Source: Bacillus subtilis subsp. subtilis str. 168 (GTDB lineage Bacteria; Bacillota; Bacilli; Bacillales; Bacillaceae). Taken from it: DNA of 64,000 nucleotides. Below are positions 1 through 54,192 of the stretch, piece by piece. The stretch covers positions 558,001-622,000 of the forward strand of contig NC_000964.3 in assembly GCF_000009045.1 (NCBI RefSeq). Reading direction: 5' to 3'. The notes below the pieces were generated by a model. It was not told where the DNA came from. It saw only the letters and a program-made list of their open reading frames with translations, and made no database searches. Numbering within the stretch: the stretch's first letter is position 1; each line of letters opens with the position of its first letter. The translations under genes were made by a program, and so were the position numbers.

Positions 1-1
1 G

Positions 2-58
2 AATATTGTTGGACTTTTTAGCAAAGAATCAGTAAAACAAGCACAGCAAGCAAATTAA
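2..58 (+). CDS. ydzN: 3' end of a small CDS entering the window (...NIVGLFSKESVKQAQQAN*)
   Basis: Open frame from nt 2 to TAA 56-58, followed by a terminator hairpin; name from recalled synteny only. Confidence 0.55.
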   Translation, partial: NIVGLFSKESVKQAQQAN

Positions 59-74
59 AAGTCATAAAGTTGGG

Positions 75-108
75 AAAGAAGGATGTTACTTATGTAGTAT
101 CCTTCTTT
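75..108 (+). terminator. Intrinsic terminator-like hairpin
   Basis: AAAGAAGGAT...ATCCTTCTTT inverted repeat after the partial CDS. Confidence 0.6.
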
Positions 109-407
109 ATTATTCCTTGAAAAATGAAACAAATTGGAGATTACAGCTTATATAATCAATTGAAGTCGTTGATTATTTTCATGAACAGGAGATTTAATGC
201 TTTCTGATGAAATATTATCGTATGAATGTTGCAAGAGGAAACGTTACTCAAAGATTACAGGGATGTGATGAACACTCCTCTTTATCGCACTCACCTGACC
301 CCAAATTGTTGGGGAAGGGCAGGTACGGAAGATAGAGTATTTTTTCTTCGTAACAAATCGAAAAGGTTGGATAATAAAAAACTTATAATCTAAGGCGGTA
401 TATAGTT

Positions 408-1001
408 GTGAAAAAGGCGTTATTTCTTATATTAGACCAGTATGCAGATTGGGAAGGTGTTTACTTAGCATCTGCATTAAATCAAAGAGAAGATTGGTCG
501 GTTCACACTGTTTCTTTAGACCCTATTGTAAGCTCAATAGGTGGTTTTAAAACATCTGTCGATTACATAATAGGGTTAGAACCTGCAAATTTTAATTTGC
601 TAGTTATGATTGGCGGGGATTCCTGGAGTAATGACAATAAAAAACTATTACATTTTGTAAAAACTGCATTTCAAAAAAACATTCCAATAGCAGCGATATG
701 CGGTGCAGTGGATTTTTTGGCGAAGAATGGTTTGCTGAATAATCATAGCCATACAGGTAATTTTGTTTACTTATGGAAAGATTACAAACAATATAAACCG
801 ATTAGCAGTTTTGTAGAGAAACAAGCAGTAAGAGATAAAAATTTGGTTACTGCTAATGGAACTGCCCCTATTGAATTTACTAATTTAATTTTAGAGATGA
901 TTGATTTTGATACTCCTGAGAACATAGAGAAAATGATGTATATGAATCGTTATGGTTTTTATCATTTTTGTGATAAATATGGAAATCCATTTGTTGATTA
1001 A
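408..1001 (+). CDS. ydeA: DJ-1/PfpI (ThiJ) family protein
   Basis: 197 aa, GTG start, nucleophile-elbow AICGA, N-terminal D..ADWE motif, LVTANG motif. Confidence 0.9.
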   Translation: MKKALFLILDQYADWEGVYLASALNQREDWSVHTVSLDPIVSSIGGFKTSVDYIIGLEPANFNLLVMIGGDSWSNDNKKLLHFVKTAFQKNIPIAAICGAVDFLAKNGLLNNHSHTGNFVYLWKDYKQYKPISSFVEKQAVRDKNLVTANGTAPIEFTNLILEMIDFDTPENIEKMMYMNRYGFYHFCDKYGNPFVD

Positions 1002-1116
1002 TTTGCTGGAAATGATTTTCCCGAATAGGGGGCTTTGCGATTGAGTTGAATTTCCTAATAAAGCAAAGAAAGATGATTTGAGGTCAAGTTTAACAAATAA
1101 TGCCATCAATATTAAT

Positions 1117-1145
1117 TTGCAGTTATTTCCGATTCCTGATATAAT
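1117..1145 (+). promoter_or_regulatory. SigA promoter of cspC (TTGCAG-17-TATAAT, extended -10 TG), giving a ~110-nt 5'UTR with an ATTATTTTTGTTC cold-box-like motif
   Basis: TTGCAG 1117-1122, TG 1137-38, TATAAT 1140-1145; long UTRs are typical of Bacillus csp genes. Confidence 0.75.
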
Positions 1146-1263
1146 AAAGAAGAATTATTTTTGTTCGGTGTAAAGGATAGTATGAAGATTGACTTTTCGT
1201 CTTGATGATACTTTGGGCAAGGATAGTATATACTGTGTGGTTACACACTAGGAGGCAACAAAA

Positions 1264-1464
1264 ATGGAACAAGGTACAGTTAAATGGTTTAATGCAGAAA
1301 AAGGTTTTGGCTTTATCGAACGCGAAAATGGAGACGATGTATTCGTACACTTTTCTGCAATCCAAAGTGACGGATTCAAATCTTTAGACGAAGGTCAAAA
1401 AGTATCGTTTGACGTTGAGCAAGGTGCTCGTGGAGCTCAAGCTGCTAACGTTCAAAAAGCTTAA
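1264..1464 (+). CDS. cspC: Cold-shock protein CspC
   Basis: 66 aa, RNP1 KGFGFI and RNP2 VFVHF, SD AGGAGG. Confidence 0.98.
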
Positions 1465-1481
1465 TCTTCAATCGTTTATAC

Positions 1482-1513
1482 AAACAGGCTCTTTATATAG
1501 GGCCTGTTTTTTT
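1482..1513 (+). terminator. cspC intrinsic terminator
   Basis: AAACAGGC..GCCTGTTT stem plus T-run. Confidence 0.85.
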
Positions 1514-1532
1514 ATGTCTATATCATACTCAA

Positions 1533-1608
1533 TAAAAAACCCTACTCAACGTTCGAGTAGGGAGATGCTACAAGGTAATAGAAAAAGATTTAAAACTTCA
1601 AAGGTTTG
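1533..1608 (-). ncRNA. Candidate ~75-nt sRNA convergent with cspC
   Basis: Extended -10 TGTTATACT (1614-1622, minus), no ORF, CCCTACTC/GAGTAGGG hairpin (1540-1562) followed by T6 on the minus strand. Confidence 0.55.
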
Positions 1609-2150
1609 TTTACAGTATAACATACTGGATTGACAATATGCGGAATGTATATAAATTATTTAATGTTTTGTTCAAATATAGATAACTGACTCTTTTTTTC
1701 ACTAACCTGTTCGTTCATTTAAGTAAGATTAGATGAATTATAAAAATGGTTTCATCTAAATGTTATCAACTCGCATATCTCTTTTATGAGAAGAAGATAA
1801 ACAATTATTATTCAATGTTGCAGTGGATATAAGAAATTCTTAAAAATAATGAGGAGATCGATTGTTTTTTTCTCCTGGAAATAATCACTTAGAGATACCT
1901 AAAACAATGAAAGCCCTACCTCTCTTCCATCCTTACGGCTCCTTGTCCGTGCCAGTGTGAATCAGGATACTAAAAAAAGTGACTATTTTATTGAGTTTTT
2001 TGGTAAAACTTCAATCTTCGCAGAAGAAATGTAAATAATAAAAATGGATTAGAATGTAGGAATAACAAAAGAGGTCGTTAATGTTCTAAACATAAGTTGG
2101 AGAAGATTTGCTTTTCATCATAATATTCCGAAATATCTTTTGGGATGTAT

Positions 2151-2612
2151 CTAACCAAAACTTTTTATTTGTTTTTCAGTGATTCCTTTAATTACTTCCA
2201 GTTCACTAATCAAAAATTCATATGCATTATCCAGCATTTTTTTTTCGCTTGCATTAAGTGCTTTTTCTTTCTTCATACGCATTAAATCACGTACAACTTC
2301 AGCACCTTCTTGTATTTCACCTGTTTTTATTTTGTCCGTGTTTATTTTGTACCTTTGCTTCCATGGCAGTAACCTATCGGATTCTCCATGCTGAAAAATG
2401 TGCATAATGTGTTTTAATGCAAGTATATCGGTAACTGGTCGTATATTCGAACTCAATATTTTACTCGTTGGAATCATAACTGTCATATTACTGATTGACA
2501 TTCTTATGACATAATACTGTTGTTTTTCCTCTAAGAATTCTTTTTCTTCTATGGCTTCAATTATACCTGCTCCGTGCATTGGATAAACAATGTTATCGCC
2601 AATTTGAAACAT
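2151..2612 (-). CDS. ydeB: CarD/CdnL-family RNA-polymerase-binding factor
   Basis: MFQIGDNIVYPMHGAGII CarD N-terminal signature; start moved to ATG 2612 behind SD GGAGGTG. Confidence 0.92.
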   Translation of the reverse strand: MFQIGDNIVYPMHGAGIIEAIEEKEFLEEKQQYYVIRMSISNMTVMIPTSKILSSNIRPVTDILALKHIMHIFQHGESDRLLPWKQRYKINTDKIKTGEIQEGAEVVRDLMRMKKEKALNASEKKMLDNAYEFLISELEVIKGITEKQIKSFG

Positions 2613-2618
2613 ATCATC

Positions 2619-2665
2619 CACCTCCATATATGGTATCCTTCTTAAGATTACCATATATGGAGGTG
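2619..2665 (-). promoter_or_regulatory. Perfect 17-bp hairpin sequestering the ydeB SD
   Basis: CACCTCCATATATGGTA (2619-2635) / TACCATATATGGAGGTG (2649-2665). Confidence 0.8.
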
Positions 2666-2681
2666 TAATATCAAAATTTTA

Positions 2682-2711
2682 ATAATAACATGATCGAATT
2701 TTTGATGTCAA
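2682..2711 (-). promoter_or_regulatory. SigA promoter of ydeB (TTGACA-18-TATTAT, extended -10)
   Basis: Reverse complement of TGTCAA 2706-2711 and ATAATA 2682-2687, TG at -15/-14. Confidence 0.75.
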
Positions 2712-3143
2712 TAACTTTTTTGAAAAAACAGATCAAGCAAAAACAATAGGGAACGTGTCGGATTTCCAATCAGGAAAAGGTCAATTGATCCGTGTGAGCA
2801 GTTTTTCATTGGCTCAATGACATTACAGAAATGATTTGAGTAGATAAGAAAGAACGATATTCGTGAAATGTCAGCTAAAAATATTTAAAGCACATGATTA
2901 AGTTCTAATTTCTTTACCGATTTGATATGGATAACGGCCGACTTACTTAATGATGCATTTTCACTTATCTTGCAAGCAGAAAAAGGTTTGTTGATAAACA
3001 TTTAGCCACCAAATTGGCATTATTATCAGGGAAATTGACAACCTTCAAATGGGTATTGAGGCGAGAAGAAAAATAAAGAAAGGAGAGATTATAAATGAAG
3101 ACCAGAACATAAAGAAGTAAAGGGGAAAGAACAAGGTTAATTG

Positions 3144-3178
3144 AAAAGCAAACTATATAAAATAGTTTGCTTTTTTTT
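3144..3178. terminator. Bidirectional terminator
   Basis: AAAAGCAAACTAT / ATAGTTTGCTTTT 13-bp stem. Confidence 0.8.
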
Positions 3179-3179
3179 G

Positions 3180-3416
3180 TTATGACTTCACTTCTTTTTC
3201 TTTCTCTTTAATGACTAATAAAACACCGCTCAGAATTAAAAACGAACCTATCCAAAATGTCCCGCCTATTTGTTCTCCAAGCAGAATCCATCCGAGTAAG
3301 GTTCCAACCAGAGGCTGAAAAAAGAAAAAGAGGCCTCCACTTGAGGCATTTAATAATTGTAAGCCGTGGTTCCACAATAAAAATGCACAAGCTGTTGAAA
3401 CAATTCCCAAATACAA
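3180..3416 (-). pseudogene. ydzE: C-terminal fragment of an EamA/DMT transporter
   Basis: 78 aa of only the last ~3 TM helices (YLGIVSTACAFLLWNHGL...LLGEQIG); upstream frame is broken, no RBS. Confidence 0.8.
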
Positions 3417-3513
3417 AAGGCCACCTAGAATTTTAGGGTCAAGCAGTAGTGGCGTAAAAATCGTGCTAGGGGAGTACCATTAACAGGGACTCCATTTATT
3501 AATAGAATAAACT

Positions 3514-4389
3514 TTATGAATTCATTTTTTTGTATGATAATGGCGTCATATTCATCGCTTGTTGAAATTTACTTATGAAATAACTGGTACTGTTAAATCC
3601 AACTTGATAAGACACTTCTGTCACATTGGATTCAGGGTGTTGCAGTAATAATAAGCTTTTTTGAATTCTATAATCCATTACATAACGTAATGGCGTCTTA
3701 TTCAGCATTCGTTTAAAATAACGGCAGCATTCAGAACGGCTCAGTTGGCCAGCTTTTGCAATGTCCTCTAATGTGATTTTTTCAACATAATGGAGATGGA
3801 TCCAGTTTAACATTTGTTTCATTCGATGACTTTTTATCATTTCAGATTGATCGTACTCTAATTGAAAACCATTAACGACCAGGTTTTTCCACATTAACGT
3901 TAATTGCATCGTAATGTCAATCTCATAGAGCGATGTCTTTTGTTGAATCAATTGATTTATTTTTTTAACAGCATCTAGAATATTTTTTGCCCACTGTTGA
4001 TTTCCAGCCAAAAATAAATAGGGCAAATTGGTTGAAAACATATAGGGCTGAACATAGCTTGAATACAGTTCCTGAGATAAAACGAAATGGGGTGACACAT
4101 TCAAGCAAATATACGTACAATCCGAGCCTTCCTTTTCTTCGGCCATGTGCAGGTAGCCGCTATTGATAAATAATCCATCCCCTTCGTGAACCTCTATTTT
4201 TTCTTCATTTATTTGAAAGAGAGCTATCCCTTTTAGTATCAAAACAAATTGGATTTCATCATGCCAATGAAGCGGAATATAGCCATTTATATTTTGATTG
4301 ATCGTTGTCTTGTAGCAGGCAACTGGCAATTCTACCGTTCGGTGCTCTGTTAATTCTTTTAAATTTTGATCGATCACAAAATTCTTCAT
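3514..4389 (-). CDS. ydeC: AraC-family regulator with cupin sensing domain
   Basis: LHWHDEIQF cupin motif, C-terminal double HTH (VGFNSTSYF); start 4389 behind GAGGTG. Confidence 0.92.
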   Translation of the reverse strand: MKNFVIDQNLKELTEHRTVELPVACYKTTINQNINGYIPLHWHDEIQFVLILKGIALFQINEEKIEVHEGDGLFINSGYLHMAEEKEGSDCTYICLNVSPHFVLSQELYSSYVQPYMFSTNLPYLFLAGNQQWAKNILDAVKKINQLIQQKTSLYEIDITMQLTLMWKNLVVNGFQLEYDQSEMIKSHRMKQMLNWIHLHYVEKITLEDIAKAGQLSRSECCRYFKRMLNKTPLRYVMDYRIQKSLLLLQHPESNVTEVSYQVGFNSTSYFISKFQQAMNMTPLSYKKMNS

Positions 4390-4501
4390 TCTGACTTCAC
4401 ACCTCAATATATTTATATTTTTTCATTCAATTTGAGTATTTTTTATCATGTTTTGCATTTATTATAACACTATTATTATATTTATTAGTGAGGAGTCATG
4501 T

Positions 4502-5461
4502 ATGAATACTTCCAATAGAAGAATGGGATTGTTCTATGTTATCACAGGGGCGACATGTTGGGGGATTGGAGGCACAGTAGCCAAAAAACTTTTTCAAGAA
4601 TATCAAATTGATGTCAATTGGCTTGTAACGACACGCTTGCTTACGGCTGGAATGTTACTTTTAATGCTGCAACTGTTCAGAAAGGATCGTTCCCAGGTTA
4701 TTGAGGTGTGGAAACACAAAGCGTCGGCTGGCCAGCTTCTAATTTTTGGCCTATTGGGAATGCTAGCTGTGCAGTACACATATATGGCATCCATTCAACA
4801 TGGGAATGCTGCCGTTGCTACGTTATTGCAATATTTATCCCCAGTAATCGTCATTATCTACACGCTGTTGCGAAAACAAACGGTTCTTACCAAACAAGAT
4901 ATCATAACTGTTGTACTTGCTTTAGTGGGTTGCTTTTTTTTGTTAACAAATGGTTCAATGTCTCAACTTTCAGTGCCGGCAGCTGCAGTAGTATGGGGAG
5001 TTTTATCAGGATTCGCGGCAGCTTTTTATACTTTGTATGCCGTTGGTTTATTAAATAAATTTGATTCTCTTGTCGTTGTAGGTTGGGCTATGATTATTGG
5101 CGGTTTTGCATTGGGTTTTATCCATCCGCCATGGCAACTGGATTTTCAACGATTAACTGCTGAGGCGTATGCATATATCTTATTCGTGATATTATTTGGA
5201 ACAATGATTGCGTTCTGGTTCTTCATAAAAAGCTTGGAAAGCCTCTCTCCAAAAGAAACAAGCCTACTAGGCAGTCTAGAGCCTCTATCAGCTGTTGTAA
5301 CAACTGTCGTTTGGTTAAAAGCGCCATTTGGTTCTTTTCAATGGATTGGTGCTATTTGTATTATAGGGATAACTTTAATATTGGCTTTACATAAAGAGCC
5401 TTCTATGGAGAGTGAAAAATCGATATTAAAGATTAGGAATCATGCAAATCGGGATATATAG
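4502..5461 (+). CDS. ydeD: EamA/DMT (RarD/YicL-like) transporter
   Basis: ~10 hydrophobic segments, duplicated EamA pattern, divergent from AraC gene; start 4502 behind GAGGAG. Confidence 0.9.
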
Positions 5462-5534
5462 GGGCTTTTTTTGCTTACATGACCGGTCCGGCAATGAAAA
5501 ACACTGGTGGAGTTTGAGCCCTCTCGGCAGTATC

Positions 5535-5570
5535 AAAAATACCAAGGGTTTTGACGCCCTAGGTATTTTT
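5535..5570. repeat. Palindromic element copy 1 (AAAAATACCAAGGG-TTTTGACG-CCCTAGGTATTTTT), probable bidirectional terminator
   Basis: Between convergent ydeD and ydeE; near-identical to the reverse complement of 17670-17704. Confidence 0.8.
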
Positions 5571-5613
5571 TCTTCAAGAACCTTCAATTTTTCTTCTCTG
5601 ATTGAAAAACGTA

Positions 5614-6486
5614 TTACTTTTTTGTGATTGGTATCCAAATTTCACTTTTAAAAGATGGTGATGTTACATCCTTATGCTCGTTCCACAATATTTCTGGACC
5701 TTCTATTTGTTCGTAATTTGACGATGGAAACCATTCGGAATAAATGCGTCCCCATACTTCTTGCAGTGTATCCGGAAATGGCCCGATTGATTCGAATACA
5801 GCCCATGTTGAGGCAGGAACTTCAAGCCGTGAGAAGTTATCTGGACACCGTTTCGTTGTGGCTGCGCCAATATAGTGATCGAGCTCTCCGTTTTCCTCTG
5901 TCCGACCTTCAGAAAAATTCGTGGATGCACTAATGAGGCCTGATGGTGCTACATTAGATAGCTCTTTTAGTTTATTTATTGCTTTTTCATCTAAACTTTC
6001 CCACATAGATGCAATTTCCGGATTAATTCCTTTGAAAATAATAGGAACTCTTTTTTTAATGCCAACGATGCGAAATGCCTCTTTTTCTTCAATACGGTAG
6101 TTCATTTCATTTCCTCCTTTAATTGTTAGCTGGAAGGTCATTCGTGGATAAGCTTTAAGGGAATGGCCATTAAATCTGGCTTTTGATGGGTTTATGCCAT
6201 GTAAATTTTGGAATGCCCGTGCAAAAGAATCTGGTGAGTTATAACCGTACTTTATTGCAATATCAATCACTTTTACATTGCTGTCTTTCAGTTCAAAAGC
6301 TGCAAGAGTAAGACGTCTGCGACGAATATATTCCGATAATGAAATACCTGCAAGGAAGGAAAACATCCTTTTAAAATGATATTCAGAGCAGAAAGCAAGC
6401 TTTGCTGCCTCTTGAAAATCAATATCATTAGTGAGGTTTTCTTCAATATACTTTAACGCCCTATTCATACTTTTAAGCAAATCCAT
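5614..6486 (-). CDS. ydeE: AraC-family regulator with GyrI-like effector domain
   Basis: N-terminal AraC HTH ([22 protein letters not shown]), C-terminal GyrI-like domain (EIWIPI). Confidence 0.9.
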
Positions 6487-20133: not shown

Positions 20134-20197
20134 ATGAATGAACTCCTTTTTAAGTGGTTTTTTGAGTGTAATCATGACTTCTCACAAGTGATTTTAT

Positions 20198-20310
20198 AAA
20201 CTGAACGTTCAGTTTCGTCGATTAATAAAAATAATATACTAAACGTTCAGTTTTGTAAATGGATTTCTGTTTTCTTTTTTTATTCAATTTAAGTATACTG
20301 AACGTATAGT
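20198..20310. promoter_or_regulatory. Three ACTGAACGTTCAGT-type palindromes, putative YdeS operators
   Basis: 20198-20215 (perfect 18 bp), 20238-20251, 20297-20310 between divergent ydeR and ydeS. Confidence 0.7.
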
Positions 20311-54151: not shown

Positions 54152-54192
54152 AAAACAAAGAGCCCGGAAAACATTCCCGGGCTCTTTGTTTT
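54152..54192. terminator. Terminator after ydgI
   Basis: AAAACAAAGAGCCCGG / CCGGGCTCTTTGTTTT 16-bp stem. Confidence 0.85.

Follow-up and report, generated by a model that had tools for sequence, protein, structure and literature searches.

Introduction

The ydeB leader of Bacillus subtilis raises the question of how a messenger RNA could be translated when its whole Shine–Dalgarno sequence (SD) is buried in a perfect hairpin, and what would open it. The window analysed here is a 64-kb stretch of B. subtilis 168 DNA, to which all positions below refer. A sequence-only reading of it had described the hairpin and suggested that some trigger is needed for ydeB translation.

YdeB carries the Pfam domains CarD_TRCF_RID (PF02559, 1.2e-16) and CarD_C (PF21095, 6.8e-28). 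The CarD/CdnL family is essential in mycobacteria and myxobacteria. The B. subtilis protein is reported to be non-essential and not to bind RNA polymerase beta (PMC5324124); the binding of RNA polymerase that the sequence-only reading gave for CarD-family proteins is thus reported untrue for this member. ydeB is reported to be induced at low temperature (PMC5324124, citing Budde et al. 2006), and its B. cereus counterpart is responsive to cold and other stresses (PMC4746229). In the literature found on ydeB only its expression is mentioned, and the leader hairpin is described nowhere in it.

Promoter and leader hairpin of ydeB

A sigma-A-like promoter, TTGACA-18-TATTAT with TG (2711..2682), matches the consensus at 11 of 12 positions and is kept in all 62 aligned orthologous leaders (80 loci fetched). 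It puts +1 near 2675, in agreement with the earlier placement of the stem about 10 nt after the predicted start. No internal promoter is evident in the leader. Published paired 3' and 5'-P ends at 2656/2655 lie inside the 5' arm, and therefore the 5' arm is transcribed. The internal 5' end at 2655 is a cleavage product and not a start site. This cleavage signature speaks against a transcription start inside or below the 5' arm (~2650), a case that the sequence-only reading had raised against its own proposal. The features of the locus are listed in Table 1.

Table 1. Positions of the ydeB promoter, leader hairpin and neighbouring features in the window
Feature	Positions	Strand	Description
-35 hexamer TTGACA	2706..2711	minus	Best consensus-scan match in the region; TTGAC invariant in 62 orthologous leaders
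Extended -10 TGtTATTAT	2682..2690	minus	Consensus scan; TG and TA...T positions invariant across genera
Predicted start region with conserved UUUGA(U)	2671..2677	minus	+1 at ~2675, inferred from the -10 spacing; TTTGAT near-invariant
5' arm CACCUCCAUAUAUGGUA (DNA letters CACCTCCATATATGGTA)	2649..2665	minus	Direct read; anti-SD CACCUCC and palindrome CCAUAUAUGG; anti-SD part confined to the B. subtilis clade
RNase Y-dependent endonucleolytic cut CACCUCCAUA^UAUGGUA	2655..2656	minus	PMC11780869; new 5'-P end 2655 = genome position 560655
Apical loop AAUCUUAAGAAGG with 4-bp mini-stem UCUU/AGGA	2636..2648	minus	From the fold; +/-1 indels of orthologues all lie here
3' arm UACCAUAUAUGGAGGUG (DNA letters TACCATATATGGAGGTG)	2619..2635	minus	Direct read; SD GGAGGUG at 2625..2619; near-invariant across genera
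Spacer GAUGAU and AUG	2610..2618	minus	Partly paired via lower helix UAUUA/UGAUA; orthologues start with ATG or TTG
ydeB CDS	2151..2612	minus	153 aa, CarD/CdnL family; 81-93% amino acid identity in 80 species-level loci
BsrC sRNA (Rfam RF01410)	1894..1980	plus	99 bits; convergent with ydeB; also in other genera

The two arms pair over 17 bp with no mismatch around a loop of 13 nt. The SD (GGAGGTG in DNA letters) lies entirely inside this stem, 6 nt 5' of the AUG; the spacer GATGAT occupies 2618..2613 and the ATG 2612..2610. The perfect 17-bp stem enclosing the whole SD, as first described from the sequence, is thus borne out by direct read and fold. ViennaRNA adds four apical pairs (UCUU/AGGA) and two lower helices of 5 bp each (UAUUA/UGAUA and UUUGA/UCAAA), which extend into the AUG and codons 2-3. 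The hairpin is the longest perfect and the top-ranked inverted repeat of the whole window. Each arm is itself a 10-bp palindrome, as had also been noticed: CCATATATGG is found exactly twice in the window, once per arm, and the two palindrome centres are 27 bp apart. The ydeB leader therefore carries a real cis hairpin that sequesters the ribosome-binding site (RBS), an element of a kind already known.

Modelled stability and excluded kinds of element

The minimum free energy (MFE) of the fold is about -33 to -34 kcal/mol (96 nt). Dinucleotide-shuffled sequences give -15.1 +/- 2.8, and none of 200 reaches the native value (z = -6.7); the leader alone gives a folding z of -8.4 versus shuffles. 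Opening the RBS (SD-AUG region) is modelled to cost 23.2 kcal/mol at 37 °C, rising to 31 when the temperature is lowered to 15 °C. In a temperature series (5-90 °C) the stem of the MFE structure stays closed at every step, with a mean probability of an unpaired SD between 0.004 and 0.08.

An RNA thermometer is rejected on this modelled series, with no melting in the physiological range. There are some likenesses to thermometers: ROSE, fourU and cspA 5'UTR (RF01766) elements also place the SD in a leader hairpin, ydeB is temperature-responsive like thermometer genes, and the leader of its neighbour cspC (window 1183-1512, Rfam) itself matches RF01766. However, thermometer stems are weak and mismatched and melt at 30-42 °C, whereas the ydeB stem is perfect, GC-clamped at the SD and predicted to be folded at 90 °C. 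That it is far stronger than a typical thermometer, as proposed before, agrees with the model. An intrinsic terminator or attenuator is rejected as well, as the terminator scan gave no call and GAUGAUAUGUUUC, with no U-tract, follows 3' of the stem. An N-terminal extension or uORF from an in-frame AUG/GUG in the 5' arm, for which the substitutions seemed conservative, was rejected because about 10 of the 62 orthologues have +/-1 indels or a TAA before the annotated start, and because there is no SD. The +/-1 indels are found only in the apical loop, so this stretch is non-coding. An Rfam search of window 1-6000 at E<=1 returned no family for the hairpin and only a chance MIR447 match (E = 0.52); PADLOC and NCBIfam gave nothing useful.

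Since the stem is too stable to melt at physiological temperature, "off unless acted on" is its natural reading. For the earlier proposal that ydeB translation is off by default, the buried SD and the modelled opening cost of 23 kcal/mol are in favour, while the block itself is something we infer from them.

Restriction of the lock to the B. subtilis clade

Orthologues were scanned with one genome per species, which gave 80 loci with YdeB identities of 81-93% from Bacillus, Fictibacillus, Neobacillus, Metabacillus, Shouchella and others. The alignment of promoter and leader is nearly gap-free. Little or no variation is seen among the 62 leaders in TTGAC, the TG/-10 positions, UUUGAU and the entire SD-containing 3' arm. 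At the place of UUACACCUCC, most genera have AAAAAAnn and no anti-SD. Their stem is reduced to (C/U)AU(A/G)U(A/G)UG versus CAUAUAUG plus a few pairs, with the SD unpaired.

The modelled RBS-opening cost falls into three ranges. It is 22-24 kcal/mol in the window, B. mojavensis, B. spizizenii, B. inaquosorum and 'B. mexicanus'; 14-18 kcal/mol in L002, B. tequilensis, B. siamensis, the B. pumilus group (L046, L054) and one Neobacillus (L072, at the lower edge); and 3-12 kcal/mol in the remaining orthologues. Because both the opening costs and the anti-SD fall off outside the B. subtilis clade, the full SD lock is, as judged from the aligned leaders, a derived trait of this clade only. It is also labile. 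The lock is mismatch-free in the window, L001, L070 and L004 (at least four species-level lineages), with the perfect stem retained in L004 as CAUGUAUG/CAUACAUG, and has one mismatch in L064. Imperfect anti-SD versions are found in L061, L047 and L002, and B. rugosus (L057) is without the lock although its CDS nests in the spizizenii/inaquosorum (L064/L070) clade. The lower stem is lengthened in the B. subtilis clade by the change of GAUUAU to GAUGAU, which turns U.U into U.G. The sequence-only reading was silent on clade-specificity, and the SD lock is no conserved trait of ydeB orthologues. An older "ancestral hairpin" appears patchy too, since about one third of the orthologous leaders fold no better than shuffles.

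Substitutions in the 5' arm

A column-shuffle covariation test gave 71.9% standard pairs versus 71.5% after shuffling, a null result because the 3' arm barely varies; in the SD part of the stem covariation is impossible. RNAalifold on the orthologous leaders found no family-wide consensus hairpin. The kinds of substitution in the 5' arm core, counted on the CDS tree, are more informative. About 30 events are A<->G opposite U and about 10 are C<->U opposite G, while pair-breaking U<->C opposite A is seen only 4 times; the control, fourfold-degenerate sites of the same sequences, has 16 A<->G and 16 U<->C. Such a G.U-tolerant asymmetry would be expected of a sense-strand RNA helix and not of a DNA palindrome or an antisense RNA, and the helix is favoured. 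Stem covariation among orthologues, which had been suggested as a check, thus gives a divided answer: the shuffle test is null and a consensus fold is missing, but the asymmetry of 30 versus 4 events speaks for the helix.

RNase Y-dependent cleavage in the anti-SD arm

The endonuclease site lists of Taggart et al. 2025 (NAR, PMC11780869) contain a single entry matching the arm sequence, at position 560655 on the minus strand, local sequence TTTGATATTACACCTCCATA|TATGGTAATCTTAAGAAGGA, with a sensitivity of 11.0165. Two tables carry it, S4 (RNase Y sites) and the relaxed S6, the cut-off being 10.69. Sites were called there from a ligatable 5'-monophosphate end in an RNase J1-deficient strain together with an adjacent 3' end in a strain deficient in four 3'-exonucleases, and from a signal fall of more than 10.69-fold without the endonuclease; growth was at 37 °C only, in 2xYT. 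We place the cut after position 20 of the listed sequence since this position is G in most rows, which is the known -1 preference of RNase Y. With this placement genome position 560655 corresponds to window position 2655, and the window to coordinates 558001-622000 of B. subtilis 168. No other site of the ydeB region is present in these lists. The leader is absent from the RNase III Tables S3 and S5 (strict and relaxed; 37 °C, rich medium), and the tables hold no second staggered cut or 5' end in the 3' arm. RNase III had been suggested as the trigger; the lone mapped cut is instead RNase Y-dependent and lies in the anti-SD arm.

Through this cut the anti-SD segment CACCUCCAUA is lost from the downstream RNA. 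The RNA beginning at the cut is predicted to form a 7+4-bp 5'-terminal hairpin followed by a free SD, with an RBS-opening cost of 7.2 versus 23.2 kcal/mol for the uncut leader. The site is AU-rich with A at -1, U at -2 and U at +1; the apical hairpin begins at +1, and the site is in a predicted duplex. RNase Y sites are typically AU-rich and weakly structured, with a purine at -1 (G preferred), A at +1 and structure downstream (PMC11780869). The RNase Y sensitivity of the ydeB site is borderline (11.02 vs 10.69), and a library artefact is conceivable because the cut sits exactly at a palindrome centre.

RNase Y cleavage is usually the start of decay. RNase Y maturation sites such as cggR-gapA are known from Taggart et al. 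2025 and, reportedly, from work of DeLoughery and colleagues from 2018. As in ydeB, the cut at such sites is immediately 5' of a stable hairpin and leads to a protected 5' end downstream. However, the cggR-gapA-type cases alter stability and operon stoichiometry and not SD accessibility, and the ydeB site, unlike them, is within a predicted perfect duplex and has neither G at -1 nor A at +1, the bases that RNase Y prefers.

Comparison with known leader systems

In the type I toxin mRNAs tisB (+42) and zorO, the primary transcript is inert through leader or long-range pairing, and nucleolytic trimming gives the active form. In the E. coli rpoS leader, an anti-SD arm further upstream masks the SD, and DsrA opens it at low temperature. 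ydeB is similar to rpoS in being a cold-related gene with an SD masked in this way and in the presumed need for a trans-acting factor, but different in that no sRNA complementary to its 5' arm was found, BsrC being negative. B. subtilis is not known to have a comparable Hfq-dependent system for such opening.

Activation by processing is reported for the type I toxin aapA1 mRNA (PMC5416894). In contrast to the type I toxins, ydeB is a CarD-like regulator gene, no antisense partner to its leader was found, and activation by the cut would be an interpretation of the mapped ends. A precedent within B. subtilis is the work of McCormick et al. 2021 (PMC8208050), where sigma-A and sigma-B mRNA isoforms differ in translation up to 100-fold through RBS-occluding structure. 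There, as in ydeB, the RBS is paired with a part of the leader that lies upstream of it, and the isoform whose shorter 5' end lacks this part is the one that is translated. The short isoform of PMC8208050 comes from an internal sigma-B promoter, whereas the sole mapped internal 5' end of ydeB is a monophosphate with an adjacent 3' end. Both leader-arm RBS occlusion relieved in a shorter isoform (PMC8208050) and relief by processing (PMC5416894) are already established.

The ydeB cassette and its neighbours

Leader conservation was rejected as evidence for the hairpin, because the synonymous sites of the CDS are equally conserved. Across genera, conservation extends to the nucleotide sequence of the whole cassette, which runs from ~185 nt 5' of the AUG to ~400 nt past the stop codon (window ~1761-2795). 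Identical codons at same-residue ydeB positions reach a fraction of 0.88 versus B. cereus, 0.89 versus Fictibacillus and 0.88 versus B. mojavensis; the neighbouring cspC-type genes give 0.85-0.97 and a csp paralogue 0.69. Copies of the cassette are found on 93 large Bacillus-group plasmids, and none of ydeB were found in phages. The ydeB CDS tree has very short branches and is in broad agreement with taxonomy. For this reason horizontal transfer alone is rejected as the source of the conservation, despite the 93 plasmid copies. This pattern of codon identity and tree shape points to extreme constraint on the mRNA plus some transfer.

In 67 of 82 loci the opposite strand carries a BsrC-like element 168-300 nt past the ydeB stop codon. 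Downstream of ydeB, 25-26 of 80 loci from several genera have a convergent csp gene, and an acyl-ACP-desaturase-like gene lies upstream in 23 loci. An antisense RNA or sRNA had been suggested as the opener; BsrC was tested against either hairpin arm in either orientation, and its complementarity is no better than that of shuffles (z -0.8 to +0.2). BsrC is a syntenic partner outside the hairpin mechanism. Of the stress module proposed for cspC, the sRNA and ydeB, the gene linkage and the reported cold induction stand, but BsrC does not pair with the hairpin; a cold-related module is plausible.

Proposed mechanism

We propose that the leader hairpin of the ydeB transcript, which starts from a sigma-A-type promoter, acts in cis as a translational lock. 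The perfect anti-SD CACCUCC of the 5' arm would hold the SD, and the AUG through the two short lower helices, in a thermally unopenable duplex. Since SD and AUG would be locked in this way, very low protein output is expected from the primary transcript, which most likely needs its 5' arm removed or displaced. The lock would be an elaboration of the B. subtilis clade, in which SD-complementary sequence took the place of the upstream A-rich tract in an older and much weaker leader hairpin; in other Bacillaceae this older hairpin would stop immediately before a free SD.

Removal of the 5' arm would be achieved by the mapped RNase Y-dependent cut, which falls midway along it and would leave a terminal hairpin and an exposed SD, essentially the default layout of other genera. 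As to what exposes the duplex to a single-strand nuclease, the basal 10 bp may be opened by an SD-capturing 30S subunit or by a helicase (CshA), and the freed AU-rich strand would then be cut at the foot of the apical hairpin. The cut would render the opening irreversible. We hold with moderate confidence that ydeB has a clade-specific cis translational lock, probably relieved by loss of the 5' arm via the mapped cut. The unlocking step taken alone, in which the cut would activate translation rather than only start decay, is a tentative suggestion. In a fuller form, which we consider doubtful, ydeB would be a dead primary transcript that is licensed by RNase Y-dependent removal of the anti-SD, perhaps needing ribosome capture or the cold-shock helicase CshA, and this switch would belong to a ydeB-BsrC cold-shock cassette of Bacillaceae that is csp-like and ultraconserved in its nucleotides.

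Alternative explanations

The hairpin could also be a constitutive damper and stabiliser without any switch, which would keep YdeB low from a very strong promoter and possibly protect the 5' end, the cut being ordinary decay. This would fit a near-consensus promoter, a dispensable protein for which no binding to RNA polymerase is reported in B. subtilis, and a borderline RNase Y score at a site of the main decay-initiating nuclease, which has 669 sites in 397 genes (PMC11780869). Yet a lock of 23 kcal/mol would allow essentially no protein, while the CDS is under very strong purifying selection, and the cut takes off precisely the anti-SD and leaves a 5'-terminal hairpin with a free SD, a stabilised and translatable layout atypical of a decay intermediate. 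We see such a damper as a possible but somewhat doubtful explanation. Less probable, and in our judgement unlikely, is a mutational and unselected origin of the perfect repeat. A quasi-palindrome would have been "corrected" by intrastrand template switching, with the SD arm copied upstream in one step and tolerated as ydeB is dispensable. It would account for the abrupt replacement of the A-tract by an anti-SD that is perfect in several species and decayed or absent in close relatives (L057; L061, L047, L002), and could even mimic compensatory change, as in L004. However, at least four species-level lineages keep the lock free of mismatches, and L064 has just one; this argues against such an origin, as do changes such as GAUGAU that extend the pairing beyond the original repeat and the ultra-conservation of the ydeB gene itself.

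Paired protein operators, which the palindromes had suggested to the sequence-only reading, would make the repeat a DNA element: two CCATATATGG operators for a dimeric repressor, or a cruciform, at ~+12 to +56, blocking transcription. Each arm is indeed a 10-bp palindrome, the downstream box is near-invariant across genera, and the placement shortly after +1 is reminiscent of CIRCE-type operators. The upstream box does not keep its palindromy, however: 47% of sequences have complementary outer pairs there, and its inner pairs are lost in 11-15 of 62 through A-to-G changes, which break the dyad but keep G.U pairs in the sense RNA. The 27-bp spacing is a non-integral number of helical turns, no extra CATATATG boxes are found near the syntenic csp/desaturase genes (2 seen vs ~10 expected), and no regulator gene is kept alongside ydeB across the orthologous loci. 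Operators are thus very unlikely. The literature found for CCATATATGG concerns only eukaryotic CArG-box and vector sequences. An RNase III substrate, or a leader opened by an sRNA in the manner of DsrA/rpoS, is most improbable. With ~21 bp of near-continuous duplex the stem has the length that RNase III needs, and BsrC is an adjoining, syntenic sRNA; but Taggart et al. 2025 (PMC11780869) give no RNase III-dependent site here in their strict or relaxed lists, the 3' arm is without the second staggered cut, and the pairing of BsrC with the arms stays at shuffle level.

Biological significance

A limited literature search returned no case of an RNase Y cut that unmasks an SD. The locus is of moderate interest, as a partly documented processing step is located exactly where unlocking of the proposed clade-specific lock would have to occur. 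If the cut truly unlocks the SD, ydeB would offer a clean and genetically tractable RNase Y-dependent switching-on of translation, and if licensing by the cut is true, RNase Y would be a translational activator for a cold-induced homologue of an RNA polymerase factor. A leader that nearly abolishes translation in laboratory conditions could explain why a function of YdeB has not been seen, and points to the conditions or mutants in which it might be. The clade-limited gain of a perfect anti-SD on an ultra-conserved leader would be a natural experiment on the origin of such locks.

Nucleotide-level conservation of ydeB and its cold-shock neighbours

A comparison of ydeB and its flanks (1761-2795) across the 80 species-level loci shows that the synonymous sites of ydeB are ultra-conserved between genera. 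Among positions encoding the same residue, 0.88-0.93 of the codons are identical when B. subtilis, B. cereus, Fictibacillus and Cytobacillus are compared, and codon identity between sister species is not above this level. Even rare codons, e.g. ATA, are preserved in the orthologues. The tree of the coding sequence has very short branches and a topology that approximately follows taxonomy. The csp genes adjoining ydeB (cspC at 1264-1464 and its counterparts in L001-L075, species-level loci) equal ydeB in cross-genus nucleotide conservation, with 0.85-0.97 identical codons between genera; for a B. cereus csp paralogue the value is 0.69. A whole-mRNA constraint is common to ydeB and cspC-type cold-shock genes.

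BsrC and the plasmid-borne cassette

The sRNA BsrC is a fixed partner of ydeB, found with it in 67 of the 82 loci. Its position is constant: in the many genera that have it, as well as on plasmids, BsrC is encoded on the strand opposite to ydeB, 168-300 nt beyond the ydeB stop codon. The same ydeB-BsrC cassette of about 1.1 kb is carried at about 80% identity by large plasmids of the B. cereus group (L081, NZ_CP007625.1; L082, NZ_CP115306.1; 93 PLSDB records), some of them with two copies. Its neighbours there are genes for a cold-shock protein and an acyl-ACP desaturase and small genes of the BC1881/YuzF family. A search for the cassette in phages found none.

Surrounding elements and a possible downstream end of the ydeB transcript

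The 525-nt gap upstream of ydeB holds an SD, a mini-ORF and a terminator hairpin; together these may encode a leader peptide or belong to a small RNA. Besides the ydeB leader hairpin, two long inverted repeats are observed in the 64-kb window, and the second of them looks like a terminator.

Features around ydeB and elsewhere in the window
Feature	Position	Strand	Remark
Intrinsic terminator	1540-1562	-	downstream of ydeB
ncr1566	1532-1610	-	genome 559532-559610 (Irnov et al. 2010)
BsrC (RF01410)	1894-1980	+	
Strong SD AAGGAGAG	within 3080-3175	+	precedes mini-ORF
5-codon mini-ORF	3095-3112	+	ATG AAG ACC AGA ACA TAA
14-bp terminator hairpin	3143-3175	+	beyond mini-ORF
Inverted repeat, 23 nt, 83%	20191-20260		24-nt spacer with AACGTTCAGT motifs
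Inverted repeat, 19 nt, 95%	54152-54192		

The genome coordinate of the published cleavage site places the window at 558001-622000 on the plus strand of the B. subtilis 168 chromosome. With the resulting offset of 558000 applied, the 3' limit of ncr1566 coincides with the minus-strand terminator downstream of ydeB. The two may mark the end of a ydeB 3' UTR of about 600 nt, or else a separate sRNA. If ydeB transcription does continue past the gene, the resulting 3' UTR would have BsrC as an antisense RNA.
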